64,000 bases of DNA from Mantamonas sphyraenae STR306. Lineage: Eukaryota; Protista; CRuMs. The first letter of the stretch is position 1; each line of letters opens with the position of its first letter. Shown in pieces: positions 1-22,000 of the stretch. A program made the translations under genes and the position numbers. The stretch covers positions 1 to 64,000 of the forward strand of contig JAPMXV010000021.1 of the NCBI GenBank assembly GCA_026936335.1, in the 5' to 3' direction. The notes below the pieces were generated by a model. That model was not told the origin of the DNA and did no database searches. It saw only the letters and a list, made by a program, of their open reading frames with translations.

Positions 1-222
1 TAACCCTAACCCTAACCCTAACCCTAACCCTAACCCTAACCCTAACCCTAACCCTAACCCTAACCCTAACCCTAACCCTAACCCTAACCCTAACCCTAAC
101 CTAACCCTAACCCTAACCCTAACCCTAACCCTAACCCTAACCCTAACCCTAACCCTAACCCTAACCCTAACCCTAACCCTAACCCTAACCCTAACCCTAC
201 CCTAACCCTAACCCTAACCCTA
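1..222 (+). repeat. Telomeric repeat (CCCTAA)n / TTAGGG, left chromosome end
   Basis: Tandem TAACCC array from base 1, with two single-base variant units (~101 and ~199), ending at taacgctatg. Confidence 0.98.
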
Positions 223-501
223 ACGCTATGCTAGTTAAGGTTGTTTATAGTTGTGTGATGATTCCGGTCTAGGTCATGTGAGTTGTGCTTGTGTCCGCTG
301 GCGGGGTGGCTGAGTTGGGTGGTGACTTGGGGCAGTTGGCAATGGGTGGGAGTGGAAATGTTGCTGGTGAATGGCCGTCGCCCTGCAACGCCGCGCAGTC
401 AGCACTGCCCATCCGCCTTCAACCAAAATATCACCAACACCCACAACTCCCTCCACCAGTCCAATACAATCCACTTGCACTCTCGTACCACCACCACCAT
501 C

Positions 502-3500
502 ATGGACAAGGACTACTCAAGCACTCCGAAGCAACAACACACACCCAACACCTACCCAGCGTGCGTTCTGCCTTCCACTCCGTTTTCTGACTGCCCGCTT
601 CTCCCGCTTCCTTGCCCCCTCCATGCCTCCGTCGCTTTCCTGCACTTCTCCCCTGCATCACCACTTCCCCATCATCACCGTCGCTGCCTTCTCCGCTCTT
701 CTCCGTTCCCCTCTCCCCTGTCACTGCCCTCCCCGTCGCCAGTTTCCCGGTCTGCCAATCTCCTCCGTTTTTTCGTCTCTGCTCGTTCCAGCCTCCCTTC
801 ACCCCGCTTCTGCCCTGACGGCGTCCATTCCGTCTTCCGCTCACCGTTCCTACCCCACCATGCCCCTGCCCGTCTCCCCACAGCTACGCGTACATGGTCC
901 CTCCCATGGCTGCCCAGCCGTTTCCGAACATGCTGCCCGCCTCTGGCGTACAAAACCCGTACCAGCACCCACAACCACCCATCATCTGGGTCCCTGTCAA
1001 CACCCATTCCCAGCAGTACCACGCATATGCTCATCAGGGCCACCCATACTATGCCTACCCTCCTCCGCCGCCTCCTCAGCCGCGACAAACCGGCCAGATG
1101 CACTTCGCTCAGCCTCCGTTGCACCCCCCGCCTGCTCAACCCACCACTAACCACAACCGCGTCCCCAAACGCATCAGTCCTGCCTTTGTCGGCATCACAC
1201 GGACCACATCCACCACCACATCGTCGTCCAGTTCTCACCAGGCCACACGGCAGACTGGAGACTGCGTCGACGACGACGCAGACCAGGACACACAAGACAC
1301 CGGCGACGTGGAGGACCTGATGTTCCTGAACTTTGGCCATCGTGAACCACGACCGTTCCCCGGCAACTCAGAATGGATGTCCAGCTCAGGGATGGAGGCG
1401 TACGAAGAAGACGGCGAGGCAAACGACATAACCCAGCAGCATGTGGACGACGAGTTGCAAATTCAGGGCTCACTCAGCATTGCAGACACTGGTGATATCA
1501 TGGATGAGGAGTACGTGCCGCAAGGCGACAGTGACGACGACGCAGACCACATAGAGCAGGAGGACACGGTCGAATGGCAACCGAGACGCACAAGAAGAGG
1601 CCACGCCCGGTGTCGCAGAGTCCACAGTAGCCGACAGACTGTTCCACAAAAGATGAAAGGCAGCGGACAGCGCAGGCGCAGGGTCACGGCTGGCAGTGGC
1701 ACAGAGACAGGAACGTCGAGCACACGAGCAAGGAGGGCCAAGAACGGAGACAACAGCGCACGGAAGAAAGCAGGCGTGAACAAGACAAGGAGGTTGCCAG
1801 ATGGTGTCGTGCGCAAAGGGTGGACAATTGGATACTGTGACGAGCGCAGCCACGGCAACAAGAAGGAGCACACGGCACTGCTGAACCACATGCACACTCT
1901 GGCCAATGAGCATCCCATTGACGACATCCCAGACCTCATGATTCTCCAGGCGCGTGTTGTGGTCTGCCATGGCACCCTGTTGACGCTGGTCCAACAGATT
2001 CAGCTCGCTCTGGGCAACATTCCCCTTTCCCAAGGCGACATGGCCTTCTGCCTCACTCTTCTCGGCCGTGAGCTGGATCAATTGGCGTGCAGTGCAGCCA
2101 TCCCCCACGCTGGTCTGGCCATGGGTGTGACAAAGGCTGGGTTGAAGGTGTGCTGGTTGGAGGAGCCACACGACCGCGGTGACCCCAACTACGCCCTTCT
2201 CCACCTGCTCATGACCGCGATGGACACTTTCGGCAACAGGTCCCTTCCCACCACATGGAAGGAGCACGAGCAGACTCAACTGTGGCTGCAGAAAGCACGA
2301 CGCCCTGCTGACAACGACAGCGACCCACATTGGACAAAATGCGACTACGACCACCACCTCACCACCATCAAGATGTACAAGTGGCAATCTGAGTCTGCGC
2401 GCAGTGGCTGGAGCACACACCCGCACAACGACGAGCGTGGCAGCTGCACGCCGCGGGAGTTCCAGACGCTGCTGGCACACATGAAGGCACGCGCAGCCAA
2501 GCACCCTCGCCATCAGCACACACACGAGCACCAGGCACTGCGTGGGCTGATCAACAACGGCAGCCTGCGGTCCCTGCTGCGACACATCGTCCTGGCGCTG
2601 GGCAACGTTGGCGTACCGCCCGTCGACCTGGCCTTCTTTGTCCGCCTCCTCCGGCCACGCCTCACCTACAAGCATGTGCAAATTGCCATCAGCCACACCC
2701 TCAGCCGCGGTGTCACCTCCCTCTCCCTCAAGATCGCCTGGCTCGACAACCCCCAACCCAGCGACGCCACACTGCACACCCTCCTCCACACCCTCATCGA
2801 CCGCATCACACCCCACATCACCAATCGACCCACCACCGTCCACGCCGTCAACGCCATCCGCATCCCCGAACTTGTTCTTCCCGAGTCAACAGAGGAGGAG
2901 ATGGTGGCCGAGGATGGCCTGCCAGATGGCGTTGTGCGCAGTGGCTGGACGTACTGGCGTAAGAGCGAGCGCATGCACAGCAACAAGAAGGAGCACACGG
3001 CACTGCTGAAGCACATGCACACTCTGGCCAACGAGCATCCCATCGACAACATCCCTGACCTCATGACCCTGCAGGCGCGTGTTGTGGTCTGCCATGGCAC
3101 CCTATTGACACTGGTCCGACAGATTCAGCTCACTCTGGGCAACATTCCCCTCTCCCAGGGCGACATGGCCCTCTGCCTCACCCTTCTCGGCCGAGATGTG
3201 GATCAAGTGGCGTGCAGAAAAGCCATCCCCCACGCTGGTCTGGCCATGGGTGTGACAAAGGCTGGTTTGAAGGTGTGCTGGCTGGAGGAGCCACACGACC
3301 ACGGCGACCCCAACTACGCCCTCCTCCACCTGATCATGACAGAGATGGACACTCTCGGCAACAGACCCCATCCCACCACCTGGAAGGAGCATGAGCAGAC
3401 CCAGCTGTGGCTGCAGGAAGCACGACGCCCTGTTGCCAACGACAGCGACCCACACTGGACTCAATGCGACTACGACCACCACCTCACAACCACCAATGTG

Positions 3501-4457
3501 GAAAAGTGGCATCCCGAGTCTGTGCGCAATAGCTGGAGCACAAACCTGCACAACGACGAGCGGAGCAGCTGCGCGGCGCGGGAGTTCCAGACGCTGCTGG
3601 CACACATGAAGGCACGCGCAGCCAAACACCCTCGCCATCGGCACGCACACGAGCAACATGCTCTGCGTGAGCTGATCAACAACGGCAGCAAGCTGTCTCT
3701 GGTGCGACACATCATCCTGGCGCTGGGCAACGTTGGCGTGCCGCCTGTCGATCTGGCCTTCTTTGTCCGCCTCCTCAGACCACACCTCACCTACAAGCAG
3801 GTGGTTGGTGCCATCAGCAACACCCTCACCCGCGGTGTCACCTCCCTCTCCCTCAAGATCGCCTGGCTCGCCAAACCCAAACCCAGCGACGCCACACTGC
3901 ACACCCTCCTCCACACCCTCATCGACCGCATCACACCCCACATCACCACCCGTCCCACCACAGTCGCACTCGTCAACGCCTACCCCATCCCCCCCTTTCA
4001 CCCTGCCCAAGCGCAAAGACCCTTCCTCCTCCTCCTCCTCCTCGAAACGGCAACGCCTCGAATGAACCACTCTTCATTCCCTCTCCCTCCCACTCACCCT
4101 CACCTCCCCACCCACCCAACCACCCTCTCCAGCACCTCATCCGGCAGTGTCACCCACCCTTCCCACCCTCTCTCCTCCACATACTCCTCCATCCCCCCCA
4201 CACCCAAACATCACCTCCCTCTCTTCCCCATTCATAACCAACCCCGTCTCTTTAGCCTCGTACACCTGTGCACCCCACCCATCCGCCTTCAACCAAAACA
4301 TCACCAACACTCACAACACCCTCCACCAGTCCAATACAATCCACTTACACTCCAGTACCACCACCACCATGGACAAGGACTACTCAAGCACTCCGAAACA
4401 ACAACACACACCCAACACCTACCCAGCGTGCGTTGTGCCTTCCACTACGTTTTCTGA
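502..4457 (+). CDS. Unknown modular repeat protein, copy 1 (2 x 375-aa repeats = 4 modules); exons 502-560, 884-4457; +1 frameshift near 3990 relative to copy 2 (homologous stop at 4065)
   Basis: ATG 502, donor GTGCGT 561, CTGAC branch ~814, CAG acceptor 883; phase matches ORF 894..4457. P/Q/Y-rich N-terminus, acidic then basic region, repeats starting at 1794 and 2919. Confidence 0.85.
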
Positions 4458-7400
4458 CTGCCCGCTTCTCCCGCTTCCGTGCTTCCTCCATGCCTCCCTC
4501 GCTTCCCTGCACTCCTCCCCTGCATCACCACTTCCCCATCATCACCGTCGCTGCCATCCGCGCTCTTCTCCGATCCCCTCTCCTCTGTCACTGCCCTCCC
4601 CGTTGCCAGTTTCCCGGTCAGCCAATCTCCTCCGTTTCCCTCTCTGCTCGTTCCAGCCTCCCTTCACCCCTGCTTCTGCCCTGACGGCGTCCCTTGCGCC
4701 TTCCGCTCACCGGTACCACCCCGCCCTGCCCCTCCCCTTCTTCCCAAAGCTACGGGTACATGGTCCCCCCCATGGCTGCCCAGCCGTTTCCGAACATGCT
4801 GCCCGTCCAAGGCGTACAAACCCCGTACCAGCACCCACAGCCACCCATCATCTGGGTCCCTGTCAACACCCATCCCCAGCAGCACTACTCATATGCTCAC
4901 CAGGGCCACCCATACTACGCCTACCCTCCTCCGCCGCCTCCTCAGCCGCGACAAACCGCCCAGATGCACTTCGCTCGGCCTCCGTCGCACCCTCCGCCTG
5001 CTCAAGCCACCAAAAACCACAACCGCGTCCCCAAACGCGTCAGCCCTGCCTTTGTCGGCCTCACACGGACTACATCCACCACCACATCGTCGCCCTCCTG
5101 CCACCAGGCCCCACGGCAGACTGGAGACAGCGACGACGACGACGCAGATCAGGACGCACACACACATGACACCGGCGACGTGGTGGACCTGATGTTCCTG
5201 AACTTTGGCCACCGTGAACCACGGTCAATCTCCAGCAACTCAGAGTGGATGACCAGCTCAGGGATGGAGGCGTATGAAGAAGACGGCGTGGCAAACGACA
5301 CACCCCAGCAGCACGTGGACGATGAGTTGGAAACTCAGGGCGCACTCAGCTTCGCAGACACTGGCGATGCCATGGATGAGGAGTACATGCCGCAAGACGA
5401 CGGTGACAACGACGCGGACGACACGGAGCAGGAGAACACGGTTGAATGGCAGCCGAGACGCACAAGTAGAGGCCTCACACAACAACGCAGAAGCCACAAC
5501 AGCCGTCTTGCTGGTCCACAGAAGATGAAAGGCATCGGGCAGCGCAGGCTCAGGGTCACGGCTGGCAGTGGCACAGAGACAGGAACGTCGAGCACACGGG
5601 CAAGGAGGGCCAAGAACGGAGACACCGGCGCACGGAAGAAAACAGGCGAAGACAAGACGAACAAGTTGCCAGTTGGCGTTGTGCGCAAAGGGTGGTCGAT
5701 GAACTGGCGCAGTGACGAGCGCAGCCACAGCAACAAGAAGGAGCACACGGCACTGCTGAAGCACATGCACACCCTGGCCAACGAGCATCCCATCGACGAC
5801 ATCCCTGACCTCACGAACCTGCAGGCGCGTGTTGTGGTCTGCCATGGCACTCTGTTGACGCTGGTCCGACAGATCCTGCTCGCTATGGGCAACATTCCCC
5901 TCTCCCAGGGCGACATGGCCTCCTGCCTCACCCTTCTCGGCCGTTGTATGGATCAACATGCGTGCAGATTTGCCATCCGCGACGCTGGTCTGGCCATGGG
6001 TGTGACCAAGGCTGGTTTGAAGGTGTGCTGGCTGGAGGAGCCACACGACCACGGCGACCCCAACTACGCCCTCCTCCGCCTGCTGATCACAGAGATGGAC
6101 AATCGCGGCGACAGGCCCCATCCCACCACCTGGAAGGAGCACCAGCAGACCCAGCTGTGGCTGCAGAAAGCACGACGCCCTGCTGACAACGACAGCGTCC
6201 CACACTGGACACAATGCGACTACGACCACCACCTCACCACAACCAATGTGGAAAAGTGGCATCCTGTGTCTGTGCGCAGTGGCTGGAGCAGGGGAACTGG
6301 CAGCGACGAGCGTGGCAGCTGCACAGCGCGGGAGTTCCAGACGTTGCTGGCACACATGAAGGCACGTGCAGCCAAGCACCCTCGCCATCGATACGCACAC
6401 GAGAACAATGCACTGCGTGAACTGATCAACAACGGCAACCTGCAGTCCCTGATGCGACACATCATCCTGGCGCTGGGCAACGTTGGCGTGCCGCCTGTCG
6501 ACCTGGCCTTCTTTATCCGCCTCCTCAGGCCACACCTCACCTATAAGCAGGTACGCGATGTCATCAGCCACACCCTCACCCGCGGCGTCACCTCCCTCTC
6601 CCTCAAGATCGCCTGGCTCGACAACCCCCAACCCAGCGACGCCACACTGCACACCCTCCTCCACACCCTCATCGACCGCATCACACCCCACATCACCATC
6701 CGTCCCACCACCGTCCACGCCGTCAACGCCATCCGCATCCCCGAACTTGTTCTTCCCGAGTCAACAGAGGAGGAGATGGTGGCCGAGGATGGCCTGCCAG
6801 ATGGCGTTGTGCGCAGTGGCTGGACGTACTGGCGCAAGAGCGAGCGCATGCACAGCAACAAGAAGGAGCACACGGCACTGCTGAAGCACATGCACACTCT
6901 GGCCAACGAGCATCCCATCGACAACATCCCTGACCTCATGACCCTGCAGGCGCGTGTTGTGGTCTGCCATGGCACCCTATTGACACTGGTCCGACAGATT
7001 CAGCTCACTCTGGGCAACATTCCCCTCTCCCAGGGCGACATGGCCCTCTGCCTCACCCTTCTCGGCCGTGACATGGATCAAAATGCGTGCGGCAGTGCCA
7101 TCTTCCACGCTGGTCTGGCCACGGGTGTGACCAAGGCTGGGTTGAAGGTGTGCTGGCTGGAGGAGCCACACGACTACGGCGACCCCAACTACGCCCTCTT
7201 CCACCTGCTCATGACAGAGATGGACACTCTCGGCGACAGGCCCCATCCCACCACCTGGAAGGAGCACAAGCAGACCCAGCTGTGGCTGCAGAAAGCACGA
7301 CGCCCTGCTGACAACGACAGCGACCCACACTGGACGCAATGCGACTTCGACCACCACCTCACCACCACCAAGGTGGACAAGTGGCATCCTGAGTCTGTGC

Positions 7401-9073
7401 GCACTGGCTGGAGCAAGACCGCAGACGAGCGTGGCAGCTGCACGGCGCGGGAGTTCCAGACGCTGCTGGTACACATGAAGGCACGCGCAGCCAAGCATCC
7501 TCACCATCAGCATGCACACGAGCACCAGGCACTGCGTGAGCTGATCAACAACGGCAGCCTGAGGTCCTTGTTGCGACACGTCATCCTGGCGCTGGGCAAC
7601 GTTGGCGTGCCGCCTGTCGACCTGGCCTTCTTTGTCCGCCTCCTCAGGCCACACCTCACCTACCAGCATGTGCAACTTGCCATCAGCAACACCCTCTCGC
7701 GTGGTGTCACCTCGCTCTCCCTCAAGATCGCCTGGCTTGACAACCCCCAACCCAGCGACGCCACACTGCACACCCTCCTCCACACCCTCATCGACCGCAT
7801 CACACCCCACATCACCACCCGCCCCACCACCATCGACGCCGTCATCACCCTCGACATCCCCGAGCTTGTTCTGCCCGAGCCCACAGAGGAGGAGAAGCTG
7901 GCCGTGGACGATGGATTGCCAGATGGCGTTGTGCGCAGTGGCTGGACACAGTGGCGCACGAGCGAGCGCATGCACAGCAACAAGAAGGAGCACACGGCAC
8001 TGCTGAAGCACATGCACACTCTGGCCAAAGAGCATCCCATCGACGCCATCCCCGACATCATGACCCTGCAGGCGCGTGTTATGGTCTGCCATGGCACCAC
8101 GACCACACTGGTCCGACAGATTCAGCTCGCTTTGGGCAACATTCCCCTCTCCAAGGGCGGCATGGCCTTCTGCCTCACCCTCCTCGGCTGTGACATGTGT
8201 CAACAGGCGTGCAGCCGTGCCATCAACGGCGCTGGTCTGGCCATGGGTGTGACAAAGGCTGGGTTGAAGGTGTGCTGGCTGGAGGAGCCACACGACCACG
8301 GCGACCCCAACTACGCCCTCCTCCACCTGCTCATGACAGAGATGGACACTCTCGGCAACAGGCCCCATCCCACCAGCTGGAAGGAGCACAAGCAGACCCA
8401 GCTGTGGCTGCAGGAAGCACGACGCCCTGCTGACAACGACAGCGACCCACACTGGACACAATGCGACTACGACCACCACCTCACCACCACCAAGGTGGAA
8501 AAGTGGGAACCAGAGTCTGTGCGCAATAGCTGGAGCACCAACCGGCACAACGACGAGCGGAGCAGCTGCACGGCGCGGGAGTTCCAGACGCTGCTGGCAC
8601 ACATGAAGGCACGCGCAGCCAAGCACCCTCGCCATCAGCACGCACACGAGCACCATGCACTGCGTGAGCTGATCAACAACGGCAGCAAGATGTCCCTGGT
8701 GCGACACATCATCCTGGCGCTGGGCAACGTTGGCGTGCCGCCTGTTGACCTGGCCTTCTTTGTCCGTCTCCTCAGGCCACAACTCACCTACAAGCAGGTG
8801 CAACCTGTCATCAGCGACACCCTCACCCGCGGTGTCACATCCCTCTCCCTCAAGATCGCCTGGCTTGACAACCACCAACCCAGCGACGCCACACTGCACA
8901 CCCTCCTGCATACCCTCATCGACCGCATCACACCCCACATCACCACCCGCCCCACCACCGTCACACTCGTCAACGCCTACCCCATCCCCTCCTTCACCCT
9001 GCCCAAGCGCAAAGACCCTTCCTCCTCCTCCTCCTCCTCCTCCTCCTCCTCCAAACGCCAACGCCTCGAATGA
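4369..9073 (+). CDS. Unknown modular repeat protein, copy 2 (3 x ~375-aa repeats = 6 modules), ~1460 aa; exons 4369-4427, 4750-9073
   Basis: Same 59-nt exon 1 and intron as copy 1; repeats start at 5666, 6794, 7916; C-terminal PKRK-(D/P/S)n-KRQR bipartite NLS-like end. Confidence 0.9.
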
Positions 9074-9133: not shown

Positions 9134-10693
9134 TCACCCAACGTGGCTGCTCGCCAACGTCCTCGCCGTCAACGGCTCACCGCCCACCGTCATCACCTTG
9201 CCGTTAAACTCCACCTGGCGCTCTGCGTTCGTCTTCAGATACACCCCCATCTTCTCAAAATGCTTCTTGTTCATCTGTGCGTCGGGCTCCCCTGCAAACC
9301 CGTCCACCACGACCTTGTCGCCTGCGTTTGCATCTGCCGGCACGTCCACAAGCTCCACCTGCGTGTGTTCCTCGTTGCTCGCAGCGAGCACCATCCCTGC
9401 GCTCTCCACTCCCACCATCTTGCTGGGTTTCAGGTTGCACACAACCACCACCAGCCGGTCCTGCAGGTCCTCCAGTTCCACAAACCCGTACAGGCCCGAG
9501 CACACCAGCCTCGGCGACTCTTCTCCCACATCAATCTCCTCGCAGTACAGCTTGTCTGCCTTTGGGTGCTTCCAGCACTTCAGCACCTTGCCCACGCGCA
9601 GGTCCAGCCTCGAAAAGTCCTCCGGATCCTTTGCCTTGTTCTTCCCGCCGCCTTTGCCCTTTGCCTTGCCCCCACCTTCCTCCACCTCCTTCTTCCCGCC
9701 CTCCTTCTTCCCGCCCTCCTTCTTCCCGCCCTCCTTCTTCCCGCCCTCCTTCTTCCCGCCCTCCTTCTTCCCACCCTCCTTCTTCCCGCCCTCCTTCTTC
9801 CCGCCCTTCTCCTTCCCACCCTTCTTCTTCTTTGCCTCCTCCTTCGCCTCCTCCGCCGCCTGCTCCTCCGGCTCCATCAAGATGTGCACCTGCTTGAAAA
9901 AAGGGCACAGACTGCTTGTTCCCAGCGTTGTCTGCAGGTAGTCAAACCACCGCGTCACTGCCGCCAGCTCCTCGCGCTCAGCCACGCTCAGCTGCCCAAC
10001 CACCTCATACACAGCGCCAAACAGCACAAAGTCGGCCAACGTCAGCACGTCGTCCACCATGTACATGCGGCTCAGCAGGTGCTCGTTCAGCACGGCCAGC
10101 CCGCCCTTCACCGCGTCGTCCAGTGCCGCCTCCTCCAGGTCACTGTTGCGGAAGGTCAGCCACTCTTCAATCTGTGTGTACGCCCCATCCTGCCCGTGTC
10201 AGCCCTCACCACTCCTTCCCCTGCAGCTTTTCCCGTGAAATGCACCCACCTCCATCATCTGCTCCTGCGACGACCCCATCAGCGACATCGCCTCGCCACC
10301 CTTGATCCTGCACAGCTGCTTGCATGTCGTGTTCACACCGCACAGAAACTCAGGGAACCCGCTCTCCGATGGGATGGCCGGCAACTGCGGCCCCCAAGCG
10401 AATCCCGCACGCATGTTTCACCCCACCCGCGTCAGTTCCCGGCCTTGCCCCTGCCAACCCTACCCCCGTAAACTCGACCGCCTAACCACATCCTCTCGCC
10501 AACCCATCCGTGTCCCCCACCCGCCCCTCGTTCCTCTGGCCTGACCCCTCCCATTTCCACGAATCCATCCTACCTTGATCTCCTTGTTGTTGTTCGTCTT
10601 TGTCGGCAACCCAAGGTATGCGGCAAGCAACACTGCCGTCTGAGCCGCAGGGCTCTGATCCACATACAGCTGAATCTTGGCGTTCTTGGACAT
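9134..10693 (-). CDS. Arc1p/AIMP1-like aminoacyl-tRNA synthetase cofactor (GST-like domain + Lys-rich linker + EMAPII tRNA-binding OB fold); exons 10693-10574, 10384-10250, 10171-9134
   Basis: LDLRVGKVLKCWKHPKADKLYCEEIDVGE...NLKPSKMVGVESAGMVL motif; GST-C-like LNEHL...TLADFVLF...VTRWFDYLQ; two phase-0 GT-AG introns with CTGAC. Confidence 0.9.
9687..9830 (-). repeat. 15-nt coding minisatellite encoding (KKEGG)n linker
   Basis: About 8-9 tandem copies of ccgccctccttcttc on the + strand. Confidence 0.9.
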
Positions 10694-10767
10694 CGGTTTT
10701 TTTTCTTTCTTTCTCCGTGCCTCTATTGGCGCACTCGCCACATGGGACGCTTCATCGCGATCAGTCA

Positions 10768-11928
10768 TCAATGCGCATGGCCCGCTTCCCCAGCTTCGGC
10801 CTCAATCAGCGTCAGCAGGCCGATCACGGTCACGCCCAGGGCAAACGCCGCGTACGAGCGGAACTGCTTGCCGCCGCGCGACATTTCAGAGTTCATGATC
10901 GGGACCAGGATCGACAGTGCCACGTACAGGAAGTTGCCAGCGGTGAACGCCACCACGTATCGGTTAAAGTCGGCAATCGACGACCCAACTCCCAGCGAGA
11001 TGAACACGCCCACCAGCGCCGTCAGCGATGACGCAAGGTTGGCGAGCAGAGCACGCCTGTGGCTATATCCAGAGCGAACCAGCACGCCGTAGTCTCCCAG
11101 CTCCTGCGGGATCTCGTGCAGAGCCACCGCAAGAGTCGTCGTCCAGCCGAGCACTTGGCTCACCAGCATTGCGCTGCCGATGGCCATGCCGTCCACAAGG
11201 TTGTGCACGCTCTGTAACACAAACACCGCCCGCCATGTCAGCAAATCCCTCTTCACATCCATCTGCTTACACGCCGCGCAGCCGCATCGCGGACCTGCCG
11301 GAAAAAAAAACCCTCCATCCACACGAAAAAAAACCCTCCGACCACTTAAACTCACCTCGGCCGTCAGATTGACCCATGCGGTGGCATTGTCCACTTGCCT
11401 GGTCTCTGCAGACTCATCGTCGCCTTCGGCGCCCTCCTTGTCCTTGACAGGCTGTTCCTCAGACGGCGTAATCGTCGCCATGTGGTTGTGCGAATGGCCT
11501 GCATGGGTGTGGCCTGTATTCCCGGTTGCGTTCTGCACAATGCGCTCCATCACCATCAGCGAGAACGCACCAAAGAATGCAGTCAACCCCAGCAGCACCA
11601 TTTGGTCGTGCTTTGCATCTTCAAAAGCGTGCGGAATCAGGTGAAGGAACGAGTCGGACATCATCGTGCCCGCTGCAATGGCTACAAATGCGCTCAACAC
11701 AGAATCCCAAGATTCCTTGTTCATGCACGGCAGCGCGGTCATACCCACCAGCGAAAGCACACACACAATCACCACTGCACCAATGGCTGAGCCCCAAGCA
11801 AGCTGCAGCTCCTCTGCCTCGTGGCCAGCCTCGTTCGCGTGGTCGTCGTGGCCCTCTTCACCGAGGACGCCACCCGCAAGCACCATCATGCACATAAGCA
11901 CAGCAAGGATCCATACACGCACAGACAT
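10768..11928 (-). CDS. ZIP (SLC39, LIV-1 type) zinc transporter; intron 11355-11212
   Basis: DSFLHLIP, His-rich loop, HNLVDGMAIG, HEIPQELGD; 144-nt in-frame GTGAGT..CAG intron with GCTGAC. Confidence 0.93.
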   Translation of the reverse strand: MSVRVWILAVLMCMMVLAGGVLGEEGHDDHANEAGHEAEELQLAWGSAIGAVVIVCVLSLVGMTALPCMNKESWDSVLSAFVAIAAGTMMSDSFLHLIPHAFEDAKHDQMVLLGLTAFFGAFSLMVMERIVQNATGNTGHTHAGHSHNHMATITPSEEQPVKDKEGAEGDDESAETRQVDNATAWVNLTAEVSLSGRRVFFRVDGGFFFPAGPRCGCAACKQMDVKRDLLTWRAVFVLQSVHNLVDGMAIGSAMLVSQVLGWTTTLAVALHEIPQELGDYGVLVRSGYSHRRALLANLASSLTALVGVFISLGVGSSIADFNRYVVAFTAGNFLYVALSILVPIMNSEMSRGGKQFRSYAAFALGVTVIGLLTLIEAEAGEAGHAH

Positions 11929-15112: not shown

Positions 15113-16024
15113 ATGTTCGCACGCTCTGCCCTCTCCACGGCCTGCACGTCCACGGCGCGCTCCCCCATCACCCTTCCTCCCTCTGCTTCCTCCCTCCTCC
15201 CCAGGCTATCCTCCTCCTCCGCCTCGGCCCATCCCGAGGCTCTATCTCCCCGCCGCGCCGCCGGAGGCCTCCTCGTCTTTCTCCTGCCCATCTTTACCAC
15301 CGCAGGCCTCGGTGCCTGGCAGTATAAGCGCCTCCACTGGAAGGAGCAGCTCATTGCAGAGCGTGAAGCTGGCCTCCAGCGTGACCCAGTCCGCATTCCC
15401 GTTCCCTTTGATCAGCAAGCCCAGGATCACCTCGAACACACCCCCGTCCGCCTTACCGGATCCTTCATCCACGACGCAGAGATGCACGTCGTTTCTCGCA
15501 CACGTGAAGGTGCACATGGCGTCCTCGTCGTCACTCCCTTTCTCGAGGCCTGCCAAGACGGATCCCAGCGCGTCGTCCTCGTCAAGCGAGGCTGGACCCC
15601 GCTTCGTGCCCAACTCCCACAATCTCGCCCAGAGCGTCTTGTCGACGGCACTGTTGCCATCAAGGCCATCAGCCGCAAGCCCGAAACCACAGGCTCCTTC
15701 ACACCCCCCAACGAACCACACACAAACACCTGGTTCTGGGTCGAGCCCCAGCGCATGCTCTCCCACGCGCTCGACTCCCTTTCCCAACAACCCCACCTGC
15801 ACAAGCTCATTGCCACGCAGCTCTCCTCCTCCGACGCCGTTGTCGCCATCGTCGACGAGCTCCAAGACGACTCCTACCAGCCGGGCACCTTTCCCATCCC
15901 CTACACTCCGTCCGTCGATCTGCCCAACAATCATCTCGAATACGTCATCACGTGGTGGTCTCTCACCGCTTGCTTTACTGCCCTCACTCTCTACCGATTC
16001 CGTCGCGGCATCAAGCTCACTTGA
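15113..16024 (+). CDS. SURF1: SURF1/Shy1 cytochrome c oxidase assembly factor
   Basis: Mitochondrial presequence-like N-terminus, GLGAWQYKRLHWK, VKRGW, PNNHLEYVITWWSL. Confidence 0.93.
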   Translation: MFARSALSTACTSTARSPITLPPSASSLLPRLSSSSASAHPEALSPRRAAGGLLVFLLPIFTTAGLGAWQYKRLHWKEQLIAEREAGLQRDPVRIPVPFDQQAQDHLEHTPVRLTGSFIHDAEMHVVSRTREGAHGVLVVTPFLEACQDGSQRVVLVKRGWTPLRAQLPQSRPERLVDGTVAIKAISRKPETTGSFTPPNEPHTNTWFWVEPQRMLSHALDSLSQQPHLHKLIATQLSSSDAVVAIVDELQDDSYQPGTFPIPYTPSVDLPNNHLEYVITWWSLTACFTALTLYRFRRGIKLT

Positions 16025-19000
16025 CCTGCTTCTGGTGGCCACTCAACGGCGTCACCGGCACCTCAAATGCATCCACGCCTTCCACACGCAACAGTCGCTT
16101 TTCGTGTGCAAACGCGCAGTACACCACGCACTGGCACTTGTCTCCGTTGGTGCACTCGCTCACACGGAACCGATACGGATGATAAAACGTTTCCGTGCGC
16201 GTGTGCGCCTCCGAACACACCTCCCGTGCGCTGCACTCAAAGTTGTCCTTGAATTTGCCCCGGTCGTTGTACTTGTTTTCGCACAGCACCAGCGTGTGAA
16301 AGTACAGAAACGGGTTGCGTCGACGCTCCGTCTTGTTGTGCGCGTGGAAGCAGCCCTTCTTCACCTTGCTTGCCAGCCTGCAACTCTCGCTCTTGTAGCT
16401 GCCCATGATGTGCAGATTCTCCGCCTCCTCCTGTCCCACAAGCTCGCTGTACCGCTCCACAACCTCGCTCGTCCGCCCTTCCACCTCTCCGCACACCCTC
16501 ACCACACTCTCCAGCGCCTCACCCATCCCCAGCGGCTCATCGTACAGCTTCAACACCACATCGCCCACTGCTTGCACCTTTTCGCTCACCGGTCCCAGCG
16601 ACTCGCTTGCCCCAAGCAGCGCAAACACGTCCTCCGGCGTCAGCCAACCAAGGTCCATCTTGTTCTGGTCCAGCAGCGCCACAAGCGACGGCGACAAATC
16701 CTCACGTAGCTTCGGCTCCCGTCCCAGCAGCAGCGTCATGTCCACCTCCACCCCACCTGCACTTGTGCTCTCGTCCAACTCGCCGTCTGCATACCACCTC
16801 TCCTTTACCGCTCCCTGCAGCACAAACGGCACCACATCCTTCAGTACAAATGTCCACAGCGTCACCTCTGGCTCGCTCGCACGCCCCAGCATCAACACGT
16901 CCAGCACCTCCATCTGACGCGCCACGTACGCGCGCACGACAGCAACGTACGCATGCTCCGCCGCCACACGCCTGTGCTCGTACAACTTCTCATCCATCAG
17001 CAGCTCCACAGCCTCCACATGGCCCCGCTCCGCCGCATAGGCGAGTGCTCCTCGGCCCTTCACGTCGCTCCGGTTCACGTTTGCGTTGTTGCTGTGCACA
17101 AGTAGCTCCAACAGCGCCACGTCGCCGTACTCCGCCGCCGCCATTACGCTCGTGCACCCGTGCTCGTCTGCCCACTCCACGTCTCCACCATGGTTCAGCA
17201 GCAGTTGTACCATCGTCGCGTTCCCTGCACGCGCCGCGTCCAGCAGACCCTTGCCCACCGTGGCTCCCACAGTCAGCAGCAGCTCCACCACCTTTTTGTG
17301 TCCCTTTGCCACCGCCACACCCACCGCGTCTTCATCCACACGCACCTGACGCGCAAGCAGCATCCGCACCATCTCTTCGTTTCCGCTCGCACACGCCGCC
17401 TGAAGCACTCCCGACCCTTCAATCTTGCCGCCTGCTTGAACCAGACGCAGCACAAGCTCGCTGTGGCCCGCTTCCGCCGCTGCCATCACTGCACTGCGTC
17501 CGTTTGCGTCCACACTCTCTGCATCGCACCCGTTCTCCAGCAGAATCTCCACAGCCTCGGCGTTTCCGGCCTCTGCCGCCCACACCAGCGCCTCTCGGAT
17601 ATTCACCTTGCGTTCCAGCAGCAGATGCAGCATCGGTTGCCCGCTTCCCTCTTGCTCGGTTGCCAACGCTGTGTGCAGCACATTTTCGTGCCGCCTGTCC
17701 TCGCTCTCCGGGTTCCCGCCTGCCTCCAACAGGTCCCGCAACACCTCTATGTGTTGTTCACGGCACGCCATGATTGCTGCCGTCGCCCCGTCGTTTGCCT
17801 TTGCCTGCACGTTTGCTCCTCGTCGCAGCAGCGCACGCACGCATTCCAGGTGCCCCTCCGCGCTCGCCAACATCAGCGCTGTCCGCCCGTGGCCATCGCG
17901 CTCCTCCACGTTGCTGTTCCAGTCCAGCAGCACGTCGATGCATACTGCGCTGCCTCCGTTTGCTGCGTGATGCAGAGCACACAGTCCCCCTTGGTCCCGC
18001 AGCCTCGGATTCGCTCCCGACTCCAGCAGCACATTCGCTGCCTCCACCGCTCCTGCCTTGTTGCTCATGCACGCCACAACCAGTGCGCTGTGCCCCATCT
18101 TGTCGCACGTGTCCACGTTGCTTCCGGCCTCCAGCAGCTCTCGCACAACCTCTGCGTGTCCTTCCCGTGCCGCTGCCATCAGCGGCGTCCGTCCAGCCTC
18201 GTCGCTACGATTCACGCTCACTCCGCCTGCCTCCAACAGCAACTTTACAACGCCCACACTCCCTGTGTGCGCAGCCCACCACAGCGCGTTGCGTCCTCGC
18301 CGGTCGTTGTTCCTTGCCTGCAATCCCGCACGCAAAAGCACGCGCACCACCTCTTCACGCCCGTGAGCACACGCAATCGCAAGCGCGTTCATCCCGTTGC
18401 GATTGCTGGCACGTGTGTCTGCACGCTCGCTCAGCAGCAGTTCCACCACGTCCACGTGTCCGTTCTCCACTGCCAGCAGCAGCGGCGTCATCCCGTTGTA
18501 GTTGGCCACATTCATGTCCCGTGCCTGGCTCAAAAGCATACGCACAACCTCTTCGTGCCCATGCGCTGCGGCCATGTGCAACGCCGTGTCCCCGGCGTCG
18601 TCCGCCACCCACAACTTGGCTCGCCCTCGTGCCAGACGCTGCAGAATCTCCACATTCCCTACACTCGCCGCACTCATCACTGCGTTTTTGTCCTTCTTTG
18701 CTCGCCTCACATCAACGTCTGCGCCATGCTTCAGCAGCGCCTCCACCATCGCCACGTCGTGGTTCCGGCACGCCACAATCAGCGGCGTCAAACCGCTCGT
18801 ACTCACCTCGTTTGCATCCGCTCCCATCTCCAACAGCGTCTGTGCAACCTGCACGTTGCATTCCGCCACCGCTTGGAACAGCGCAGGCACCTCACGTCCT
18901 CCAAAGTCGTTCCGCGCGTCCAGCACCGTGCTCTGCTGCGCCACACTTGACCATCCTCGCATCCCGCTACTACTGCTGCTACCGCTGCTGCTTCCACTCC

Positions 19001-22000
19001 CGTCCACCTCCACTCCCGTCCCTGCCGCCACACTGCTCCACAGGAACCCACTCGACGTCGACAAGCTCCCATTCCCGCCTCCACCTCCGCCTCCACCTCC
19101 ACTCTCCAGATTCATCGGCGCCACTCCACGACCAGACCCTGAGCCCAGTGTTGACGTCGTCGGCGACGCCGCAAACAATGAACTGCCCGTCCCGCCAACC
19201 CCACCAAACGAATTCACACCCACACTCATGCTCTCCGCCGCCACGCTTGGCGCTTGGCCATTTGCCTGAACCGCACTGCTGCTGCTGTTGCTGCTGCCAC
19301 TCTCCTCGTCCTGCACCACAGCACGCACATGCTCCGCCAGCTCCTCCGGAAACTGGTCTGTGCGCAGGCCCGCAAGCACACCGTGCCGTACAAACTCCAT
19401 CACCATACGCATGTCCATCGCCTTGTTCGCCCCGCCCGCCTTCAGCTTGCGCCCCACTCGCGGCTTGCCAATGGTCTTGCCCTGCTGCACCGCCACAAAG
19501 CTGTGCAGCAGCAGTTGATGCCCGTGCACAATGTCCAGCGCAAACGTGGCCTCCTCTGCACGTGCAAGCTCCGTGCGCATGTACTGCACAAGCGACCCGT
19601 GCATGAGCTCGTAGCATCCATCCCTGCGTCGCCGCACAAGCGGCTCCAACCGCTCCAGCATCTCTGCAAACTCATCTCGCGAAACAACCTCAATTGCCGT
19701 CTCCTTGTACATCTCGCTTGGCGATGCACGCTCGCATTGGCTGTACGCAAGCAGCAGCTGCTCTTCGCTCAGCGGCTGGAACGACGCAAGCATCACCTCC
19801 AGAATCGGACGGAAGTACACAAAGCCCAACCCGTCCGGAAACTCCTGTTCCAAGATGAAGCGGTACACCGTGTCAAACAGCTCCTCCTCACTCGTCGCCA
19901 CGGGGATGTCGTCCACAGACAGCTGGTACTTGTGGATCAGGTCGCAAAGCATCGAACAGCACAAAAAGTTCCCGTGTCCACAGCTGTACAGCTGGTTCAC
20001 AAGCCAGTCAAAGTACCGGCTCTGCCCGCGGTCCGACGGGTCGTATTGCTTTGCCATCGCCAGCCGCTGCCGCAAAAACACCTTGACGTCCTTCAACGCT
20101 CCTTTGTCCAAGTCCAGGTCCACCCGCCTGCGCACGTGCGTCGGAAACTGGGTTTCCCACCCGTGCCCTCCTCGTCCTCCTGTCCGGCCCGTCAGCACCA
20201 CCTTCAACCACTCCGGCAGCTTGCCCAGCGCACGCGCAATCGACGCAGACACCTCTATGTGTGCTTCGTCCAGCCCGTCCACCACAATCAGACGCGTCTG
20301 CGCCTCCCCCAGCTCTTCCAGCTTGATTGCACTCAGCGGCCCAACCACATACTTCTCAAACGCATCCTCCGCCTCCTTCCGCGACCGCATCGAGTACCTC
20401 GCAACTCCGATGGCCTCACGCCGTGCAAACGCATGCACCTGCCGCGCATACGCTGGCAGCGATCGCATCAGCTGCCCACTCAGCGTCTGCACGAAATGGT
20501 CCAGCTGCAGCGTCTCCACACGTCGCGAGTCACACAGATAGCATGCCACCACACGCGAGTAGCTCATCAGCTGGTCGTTCGACACAAGCTCCGCACACAG
20601 CGCCGTTTTCCCCGATCCTGCTGCACCCGTCACAAGAAACACAGGCTTGGGGTCTCCCGACGACGCAAACAGCTCCAGCTGCTTCAGGATTGCCGCACGG
20701 CCCGAAAACGTCTCTCGCAGCTGTTGCAGCTGCTCCAAATACTCCCGCTCTGCAAAGTGCCTGCTCCACGTCACGTACAGCAGGTACAGCGATCGCGGGT
20801 GCATGTGTTCCCAGTGGTACAGCTCAATCTTCGTTTGCGACTCAATCGACCGCATATGGCGCCTGCCCATTTGAAACGCCGTCTTTACAGACCGCCCATT
20901 GCCCAGCGCCCTGTAGAAGCCCTCTGCAAACTCTTTGCACGCCGGCGACTCGATCGCCACCGGGTGACACACCACAACTGGCACGTACTCCACCAGCGAC
21001 TGTGCATACATCGGCGACACGCCACCATTCAACACCACACACAGAATACCGTGGTGCCGCGCCGCAAGCAGGTCCACAAGCGTGCGGAAAAAGTGCTCGT
21101 GCGGCGACTCGGACCCCGATCCGCCCGATCCCGAGCTGTTTGACGACCTGATACGAGGCCGCCCCGTCGCCGTCTCTCCGTGATCGGTGTCATCAGACGA
21201 CAGCGACGACACCGACGACGAGTCGCTGTGGTCATCCTCCCCCTGGGCCGTCGCCTCAAACGTCGCAAAGTGCAGAATCGTCACGTCATCCCGCGAGCTC
21301 AACAGCGCCTCCAGAGCCTCCACCCCAAACGAATCGTGTCCGTTTAGTTTAAACTGGCTTTGGTACGAGCTGTCTGCCAGCTCCGAGCTGATGCACGAAA
21401 ACTCCTTGTCTGCCAGTGCCGCTTGGTCGCCTGCGTTCGGCTGGCAAAACTCCACGTGCACAACACGCGGTTCTCCTTCCACCGCACACGAAAGACGCAG
21501 ATCCGATGTGCTCTCTGCCGCCGCGTGTTCCACAAGCTGCTCATTGTCTGCCTTCAATGAAAACGACGCAGTGCGCGTCAAGTTCGCCTTCAGCAGCGGC
21601 TTGCCACGCTGGTGGCTTCGAACCGCACGCAGAAGATGCCGCCTGTCGTTGGCCGATGTAATCTCATAGTCCCGCAGCAGGATATTCTCTGTAGCATTCA
21701 GCAGCGCCACGCCAGGCACGTTCTCGAACCGTTCCGCGTACATAGACAGGCCGATCGACGTCAGAAACTCGCTCACCTCGGCCGCATTCCACCGTGCCAT
21801 GTTGCTGTTGCTGCTTGTTGCGCTCGCGCCCTGGTGGCTGGCCCCCATACCGCTCACGCCGGAAGCTCCGTTTGCCCCGCCCCGACGCGCGGCCGCTGCC
21901 TTGGCAAACGGCGACGGTGCAAACGTATCCTGTGCCACAGCATCTGTCGGCTGCGCGGCTGCAACCACTTCCTTCTCTGGCGACGCCGGCTCCGTGCTCG

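Follow-up and report, generated by a model that had tools for sequence, protein, structure and literature searches.

Tandem helical domains with one hypervariable helix face at the chromosome ends of Mantamonas sphyraenae: a candidate repertoire of nuclear DNA readers

Mantamonas sphyraenae is a deep-branching marine protist that carries about 200 copies of a previously undescribed gene. Two of these copies, gene 1 and gene 2, lie at the telomeric end of the stretch analysed here, the first 64,000 nucleotides of contig JAPMXV010000021.1 (the window). Each gene encodes a P/Q-rich, acidic and basic N-terminus, one to three or more modules of ~375 amino acids (aa), and a tail that resembles a nuclear localization signal (NLS). 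The ~375-aa module consists of two homologous helical domains of ~140 aa, A and B. Strong positive selection acts on one exposed face of helix 5 in both domains, the module framework is under purifying selection, and the genes bear a predicted intron, recombine with one another and are transcribed as a family. On balance, the family is slightly favoured to be a repertoire of nuclear, sequence-specific DNA readers that is encoded by the host and recombines.

Variable positions and selection

Thirty loci were picked by similarity to module 3 of the window, and the 54 modules aligned from them are the basis of the analysis of variability and selection. An earlier note, made from the window's sequence alone, had described five ~375-aa modules with homologous halves that vary at equivalent positions. 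All five were located (Table 1), the variable helix strings listed for the local copies match the sequence, and the A and B halves share 30% identity over 138 aa (E 3e-13). The hypervariable codons are 11, 62, 96, 99, 100, 103 and 104 in A and 206-209, 256, 290, 293, 294 and 298 in B, and per-column variability is correlated between the halves (Spearman 0.50, permutation p<1e-5). Helix 5 is the only hypervariable helix of the seven in each domain, which is true of both halves, and its variable face opposes the hydrophobic face (163 and 175 degrees in the two halves), as expected from the claim that a single alpha-helix face varies. An additional, third variable spot lies at module positions 62/256. 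The helix codes are nearly all different, with 49 A and 48 B codes among the 54 modules.

The framework codons have a nonsynonymous polymorphism (pN) of 0.047 and a synonymous polymorphism (pS) of 0.143. Model M2a is preferred to M1a with a likelihood-ratio statistic of 592 and an omega of 5.0 on 5.6% of sites (own implementation); this comparison is unsafe alone because the copies recombine heavily, with four gametes in 64-79% of site pairs and linkage that decays within 60 nt. A per-site test leaves the synonymous rate free at each site, takes its sites from the opposite half, and was run on both a tree and a star. At the variable sites it gives an omega of at least 20 on tree and star, with a doubled log-likelihood difference (2dL) of 79-127, values of omega that multi-base changes may inflate; the buried helix-5 neighbours used as controls have an omega of 0.1 and 19 other polymorphic sites an omega of 2. 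Positive selection acts on three spots per domain, and the diversifying selection proposed in the earlier note is borne out by site-wise dN/dS across the paralogues. Its further claim, that the invariant codons show no synonymous change, holds for the five local copies and fails across the 54 paralogues, where they vary at the background rate.

A neutral origin, in which a homogenised subtelomeric repeat subject to mutation hot spots or errors of assembly produced the pattern as a by-product, draws on a count-only star-tree null with strong rate variation and neutrality at all sites, which can yield 7-13 equally variable sites, and on frameshifts in several copies. Against it, synonymous rates are not elevated at the majority of variable codons, omega is far above 1, variation recurs at identical positions in A and B and follows a helical period, and Illumina DNA and RNA contigs carry alternative variable-helix sequences. 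Among four-fold sites, 1 of 119 has a nucleotide diversity (pi) of at least 0.5, first and second positions of the variable codons reach 0.5-0.74, and all four bases vary at the variable sites. The A/B correlation and the per-site omega largely refute the neutral account, which is left with very little probability.

Homology searches and predicted fold

The family had no match in Pfam, named PHROGs, NCBIfam or PDB sequences, and no relatives were found in a 5.8-billion-protein search, a 1.84-billion-representative profile search, ESM Atlas features, JGI metagenomes or IMG/VR, which agrees with the earlier note's failure to recognise a known family. The queries were exon 2, since exon 1 has only 19 codons; the exons were joined locally for frame and dN/dS. 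For other Mantamonas species these negative results carry little weight, because the family breaks into contigs of ~100-150 nt in short-read assemblies, and the species' own genome is absent from those libraries too. Repeats were masked before gene calling in the genome paper (PMC10492846), and this may explain the absence of the family from protein databases. A literature search found no published description of the family. Two weak leads were rejected: Pfam scores for GemA/DUF3349 arise from summed repeats and are below the cut-off, and a retroviral capsid-derived (Fv1-like) origin, suggested by a likeness noticed by eye, had one row at E 0.9 with a poor model and none with the better model.

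The whole-module model has a predicted local distance difference test (pLDDT) of 52 and only generic helical matches. A model of the B domain built with the A+B alignment reached a pLDDT of 71 and a predicted template modelling (TM) score of 0.68 in one of five models. Foldseek returned no significant match for it, and the best hit of a wide structural search has a Z of 4.9, with none at 5 or above. About 45 of the top 50 rows are, by titles and ranges, winged-helix domains aligned to model residues ~55-119, and they include Fur, CRP, RNAP delta, MecI, SAMD1-WH, forkhead, E2F, linker histone, Stn1 and cullin WHB; FUR and Rrf2 are also among the Atlas structural rows at TM 0.36-0.42. The predicted three-helix core aligns with winged-helix domains at a root-mean-square deviation of 2.3-3.5 over ~60 residues. 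The variable helix (model residues 92-102) falls on the recognition helix of the aligned domains, and this gives weak support (Z<=4.9) to the helix-turn-helix (HTH)-like arrangement proposed in the earlier note.

FOXO1 helix 3 contacts DNA through Asn211, His215 and Ser218, and N-terminal residues of H1 also contact DNA (PMC8034652). Site 62/256 lies where core helix 1 begins, and the FOXO1 counterpart of that helix also makes contacts of this kind. The variable helix positions are spaced i, i+4, i+7, equal to the spacing of the three helix 3 residues. Any exposed helix face gives this spacing, and the telling point is instead that, of seven helices, variability falls on the recognition-equivalent one in both halves. 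Together these features agree, weakly, with a winged-helix-like fold, which is a lead and not an assignment to that class.

Evidence for a DNA ligand and alternatives

Of the residues at the variable helix positions, 72% are R/K/H/Q/N/D/S, polar types suited to reading bases, whereas aromatics make up 2.6% and Glu 0.6%; Glu exclusion has a p of 0.011, post hoc. The B cores are basic, with a mean charge of +5.4, and the A cores are nearly neutral at +1.6. The NLS-like tail, KRK-polySer-K[RH]QR, is conserved in 24/24 terminal modules. The family proteins have a hydrophilic N-terminus with no signal peptide or clear membrane segment, and the maximum 19-residue hydropathy, 1.88, is located inside the helical cores.

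In the proposed mechanism each ~140-aa domain would contain a winged-helix-like core and insert helix 5 of it into the major groove, further DNA contacts would come from an N-terminal arm and from the beginning of core helix 1, and four to six domains per protein would read a long composite site. The NLS-like tail would import the protein into the nucleus, where the P/Q-rich, acidic N-terminus may recruit chromatin or transcription machinery. Ectopic recombination between chromosome ends would shuffle specificities and selection would drive them apart. If the proteins do read DNA, the likeliest opponent, by a small majority, is fast-changing mobile or viral DNA; the remainder falls to a PRDM9-like Red Queen on host sites or to ordinary regulation. 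A bolder version, in which tandem winged-helix-like domains form a modular, re-targetable DNA code independent of zinc fingers and TAL effectors and serve as a genome-defence repertoire diversified by end recombination, is put forward only tentatively.

Several results weigh against DNA reading. No HTH family appears, even weakly, in the Pfam, NCBIfam and PDB sequence searches; a single model of five reached a pLDDT of 71, and only the B half modelled well. A Z of 4.9 and TM of 0.36-0.42 are within the range of chance helical matches, the predicted wing has a pLDDT below 50, the A cores lack a marked positive charge, and many of the winged-helix rows (cullin, Stn1, RPA) are protein-binding. 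No effector domain is recognisable in the family proteins. Retroelements are not an obvious target in a genome with one reverse transcriptase (RT) and no integrase match; a packaging ATPase match is likewise absent from the genome, and there is one weak match to a protein-primed polymerase. The latter, to protein-primed DNA polymerase B, is at G000:C42:660604-661026 (+) with E 2.4e-5, in a 1048-codon frame.

The proteins could instead act as immune receptors inside the cell, using the variable helix to bind foreign proteins (viral or symbiont) in the nucleus, much as LRR or TPR arrays do. Such receptors would leave an identical selection signature, some of the matched winged-helix domains (those of cullins, Stn1 and NLRs) are protein binders, and the nearly neutral A core and the lack of significance of the fold match also speak for them. 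Typical protein-binding surfaces, by contrast, are not poor in aromatics and Glu, of which the variable residues are nearly free; a domain search found no NTPase or death-type signalling domain in the family proteins, and it is the recognition helix in particular to which the variable helix corresponds in the structural alignment. Immune receptors are considered unlikely, and a very low probability is given to readers of RNA or of structured nucleic acid, of the SelB or Z-alpha winged-helix type, in place of double-stranded DNA. The residue composition indicates just a polyanion partner and SelB is among the structural rows, which would suit such readers; the variation is on the helix positions predicted to face the major groove and not on the wing, which would not.

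Chromosome-end distribution and transcription

The published assembly of M. sphyraenae has 25.06 Mb in 78 contigs, 59% GC and TTAGGG telomeres (PMC10492846). Searches of its 78 contigs (25,061,354 bases) gave 403 module candidates, 201 matches by N-terminus and 744 by half-domain profile, which corresponds to a family of ~200 genes and ~400 modules with 79-86% protein identity. The family occupies most chromosome ends, with all copies directed inward, a distribution measured at contig left ends. In the N-terminus search every + strand match starts less than 9 kb from the contig left end, at least 52 left-end copies are within 1.3 kb of the contig end on the + strand (hand count), and every - strand match lies beyond 130 kb. 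At G000:C29:75634-101917 the family occurs on both strands, and open frames there reach 3224 codons; the region is either a misjoin or an unusual cluster, internal or inverted.

The fixed distance and orientation at these left ends raise the possibility of a selfish chromosome-end element, or of a drive or self-recognition system, in which recombination spreads the genes to every end and the variable surfaces tell self from non-self copies. The polarity of the family is the same as that of HeT-A at chromosome ends, tandem copies have one junction in common, and at one end (L010:1-200, G000:C76) telomere repeats are fused directly inside exon 1, which marks a healed terminal truncation. Against a selfish element, the copies have a conserved predicted spliceosomal intron and ragged 3' boundaries without poly(A), and they lack terminal repeats and internal telomere repeats. 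The whole genome has a single RT (RVT_1) match, at G000:C3:7371-7718 (-), just inside a subtelomeric family copy. Because of the intron, the ragged 3' boundaries, the lack of poly(A) and terminal repeats and the single RT, together with the common tandem junction and the healed end, the spread of the family fits ordinary exchange between chromosome ends and not retrotransposition, and a selfish element is regarded as quite unlikely.

Run X3 is RNA: over the neighbouring gene it has two spliced joints (10171-10250 and 10384-10574) and an intron bin without coverage. It places 1,911 contigs on the window, and summed depth over the family module is similar to that of the DNA runs, contig depth being a poor measure of expression level. 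The family is transcribed, at the level of the family rather than of these two copies, because DNA contamination of that size would have covered the intron of the neighbouring gene too. Three 2024 biofilm metagenome runs contain 5-8% of sampled words from window positions 4760-9073 and possibly hold a related strain.

Gene structure and surroundings

Gene 1 and gene 2 each have an upstream predicted coding exon of 59 nt and a predicted intron of ~323 nt. A 59-nt coding exon and a GT-AG intron of 318-330 nt are found upstream of the long exon in 26/26 copies that cover the region; the predicted exon 1-exon 2 join is in frame, and family intron lengths are not bound to multiples of three. In gene 1 an additional base in a C-run near 3983-3995 places the NLS-like tail out of frame as assembled. 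This may be an assembly error, because the assembly was built from early PacBio reads, or a real break.

Table 1. Features of the telomeric end of the window, with module 4 as the numbering reference
Feature	Position	Strand	Remarks
Telomeric array (TAACCC)n	1..228	+	~38 hexamers
Telomere-proximal cap	229..407		80-93% conservation among other chromosome ends; missing in tandem internal copies
Gene 1 predicted coding exon 1	502..560	+	59 nt; inferred; equal length in 26/26 copies
Gene 1 predicted GT-AG intron	561..883	+	paralogue introns 318-330 nt; donor GTGCGT in all
Gene 1 N-terminal region	884..1793	+	P/Q/H/Y-rich, then acidic, then basic
Module 1 (A+B domains)	1794..2915	+	variable helices 2079-2111, 2667-2699
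Module 2	2919..3998	+	variable helices 3204-3236, 3792-3824
Gene 1 tail with +1 frameshift	3983..4065	+	NLS tail in other frame ends 4065; assembled frame continues to 4457
Gene 2 predicted coding exon 1	4369..4427	+	
Gene 2 predicted intron	4428..4749	+	
Gene 2 N-terminal region	4750..5665	+	
Module 3	5666..6790	+	variable helices 5954-5986, 6542-6574
Module 4	6794..7909	+	numbering reference
Module 4, A half			variable loop 6824-6841; site 62 at 6980; winged-helix-like core 6971-7159; variable helix 7079-7111
Module 4, B half			loop 7412-7423; site 256 at 7562; core 7553-7738; variable helix 7661-7693
Module 5	7916..9007	+	variable helices 8201-8233, 8789-8821
Gene 2 bipartite-NLS-like tail	9005..9064	+	KRK-polySer-K[RH]QR; stop 9071-9073

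Ordinary genes, for an Arc1p-like tRNA-binding protein and a ZIP transporter, start directly after the family. The Arc1p/AIMP-like gene (9134-10771, - strand) has its stop ~60 nt from that of gene 2, a 15-bp repeat at 9685-9830 and two RNA-supported introns. Further inward, 16017-21848 (- strand) encodes a 1943-aa protein with SAM, a NACHT-like NTPase (NPHP3_N/AAA_16), a TANC1-like winged helix and ankyrin repeats, a predicted STAND/NLR-like layout. Over window positions 1-53000 a negative GC skew (C-rich + strand) persists ~50 kb inward from the telomere.

Comparison with known systems

Few scaffolds are known to carry programmable protein-DNA codes, namely C2H2 fingers and TAL effectors, with PPR and PUF proteins for RNA. 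With ~400 modules and nearly all-different helix codes, one cultured species would offer a natural library for reading a code, and if the DNA-reader interpretation is true, a KRAB-ZFP-like strategy would exist near the base of Amorphea. Should the ligand be a protein, the family would still be a large orphan one on which strong diversifying selection acts.

In KRAB-ZFP and PRDM9 proteins, DNA-reading domains are arrayed in tandem, their scaffold is conserved and positive selection falls on the specificity residues of one helix (PMC4592553). The family resembles them in its clustered, lineage-specific tandem domains, in positive selection on one helix face and in an N-terminal effector-like region. 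This is a likeness in way of working and not membership, the nuclear location of the family being predicted and its DNA binding inferred. It differs in the lack of a C2H2 motif and of a KRAB or SET domain, for which reason a zinc-finger assignment was rejected, and its unit is an all-helical domain of ~140 aa, arranged in A-B pairs, 4-6 per protein, at chromosome tips. TAL effectors also have near-identical repeats with focal variable residues; however, their repeats are 33-35 aa with two variable residues, whereas those of the family are ~375 aa with 6-10 variable residues per domain and no Pfam match. The kinship with TAL effectors or zinc fingers suggested in the earlier note does not fit in repeat length or motifs. 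A diversity-generating retroelement target was rejected as well, the variation being not adenine-specific and the genome having one RT.

Like the subtelomeric families var, Y' and TLO and the telomeric retroelements HeT-A and Athena, the family is present at most ends with fixed polarity and ectopic recombination. It differs from them in having no signal peptide, helicase or RT, in its predicted spliceosomal intron and in its predicted nuclear location. Telomeric retroelements (HeT-A/TART, Athena) were rejected for want of an RT partner, poly(A) or telomere repeats at the junctions, and so were variant surface antigens, which carry a signal peptide and a membrane or glycosylphosphatidylinositol anchor, because the N-terminus of the family proteins is hydrophilic and their C-terminus NLS-like. 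A tentative structural likeness is to winged-helix domains (forkhead, HARE-HTH/RNAP delta, linker histone, SAMD1-WH and Fur), with which the family may share a three-helix core and short wing; it differs in having no sequence-level match, a Z of 4.9 or less, two extra N-terminal helices and one C-terminal helix. To our knowledge the recognition helix of known winged-helix families is conserved, whereas in this family the equivalent helix is hypervariable.

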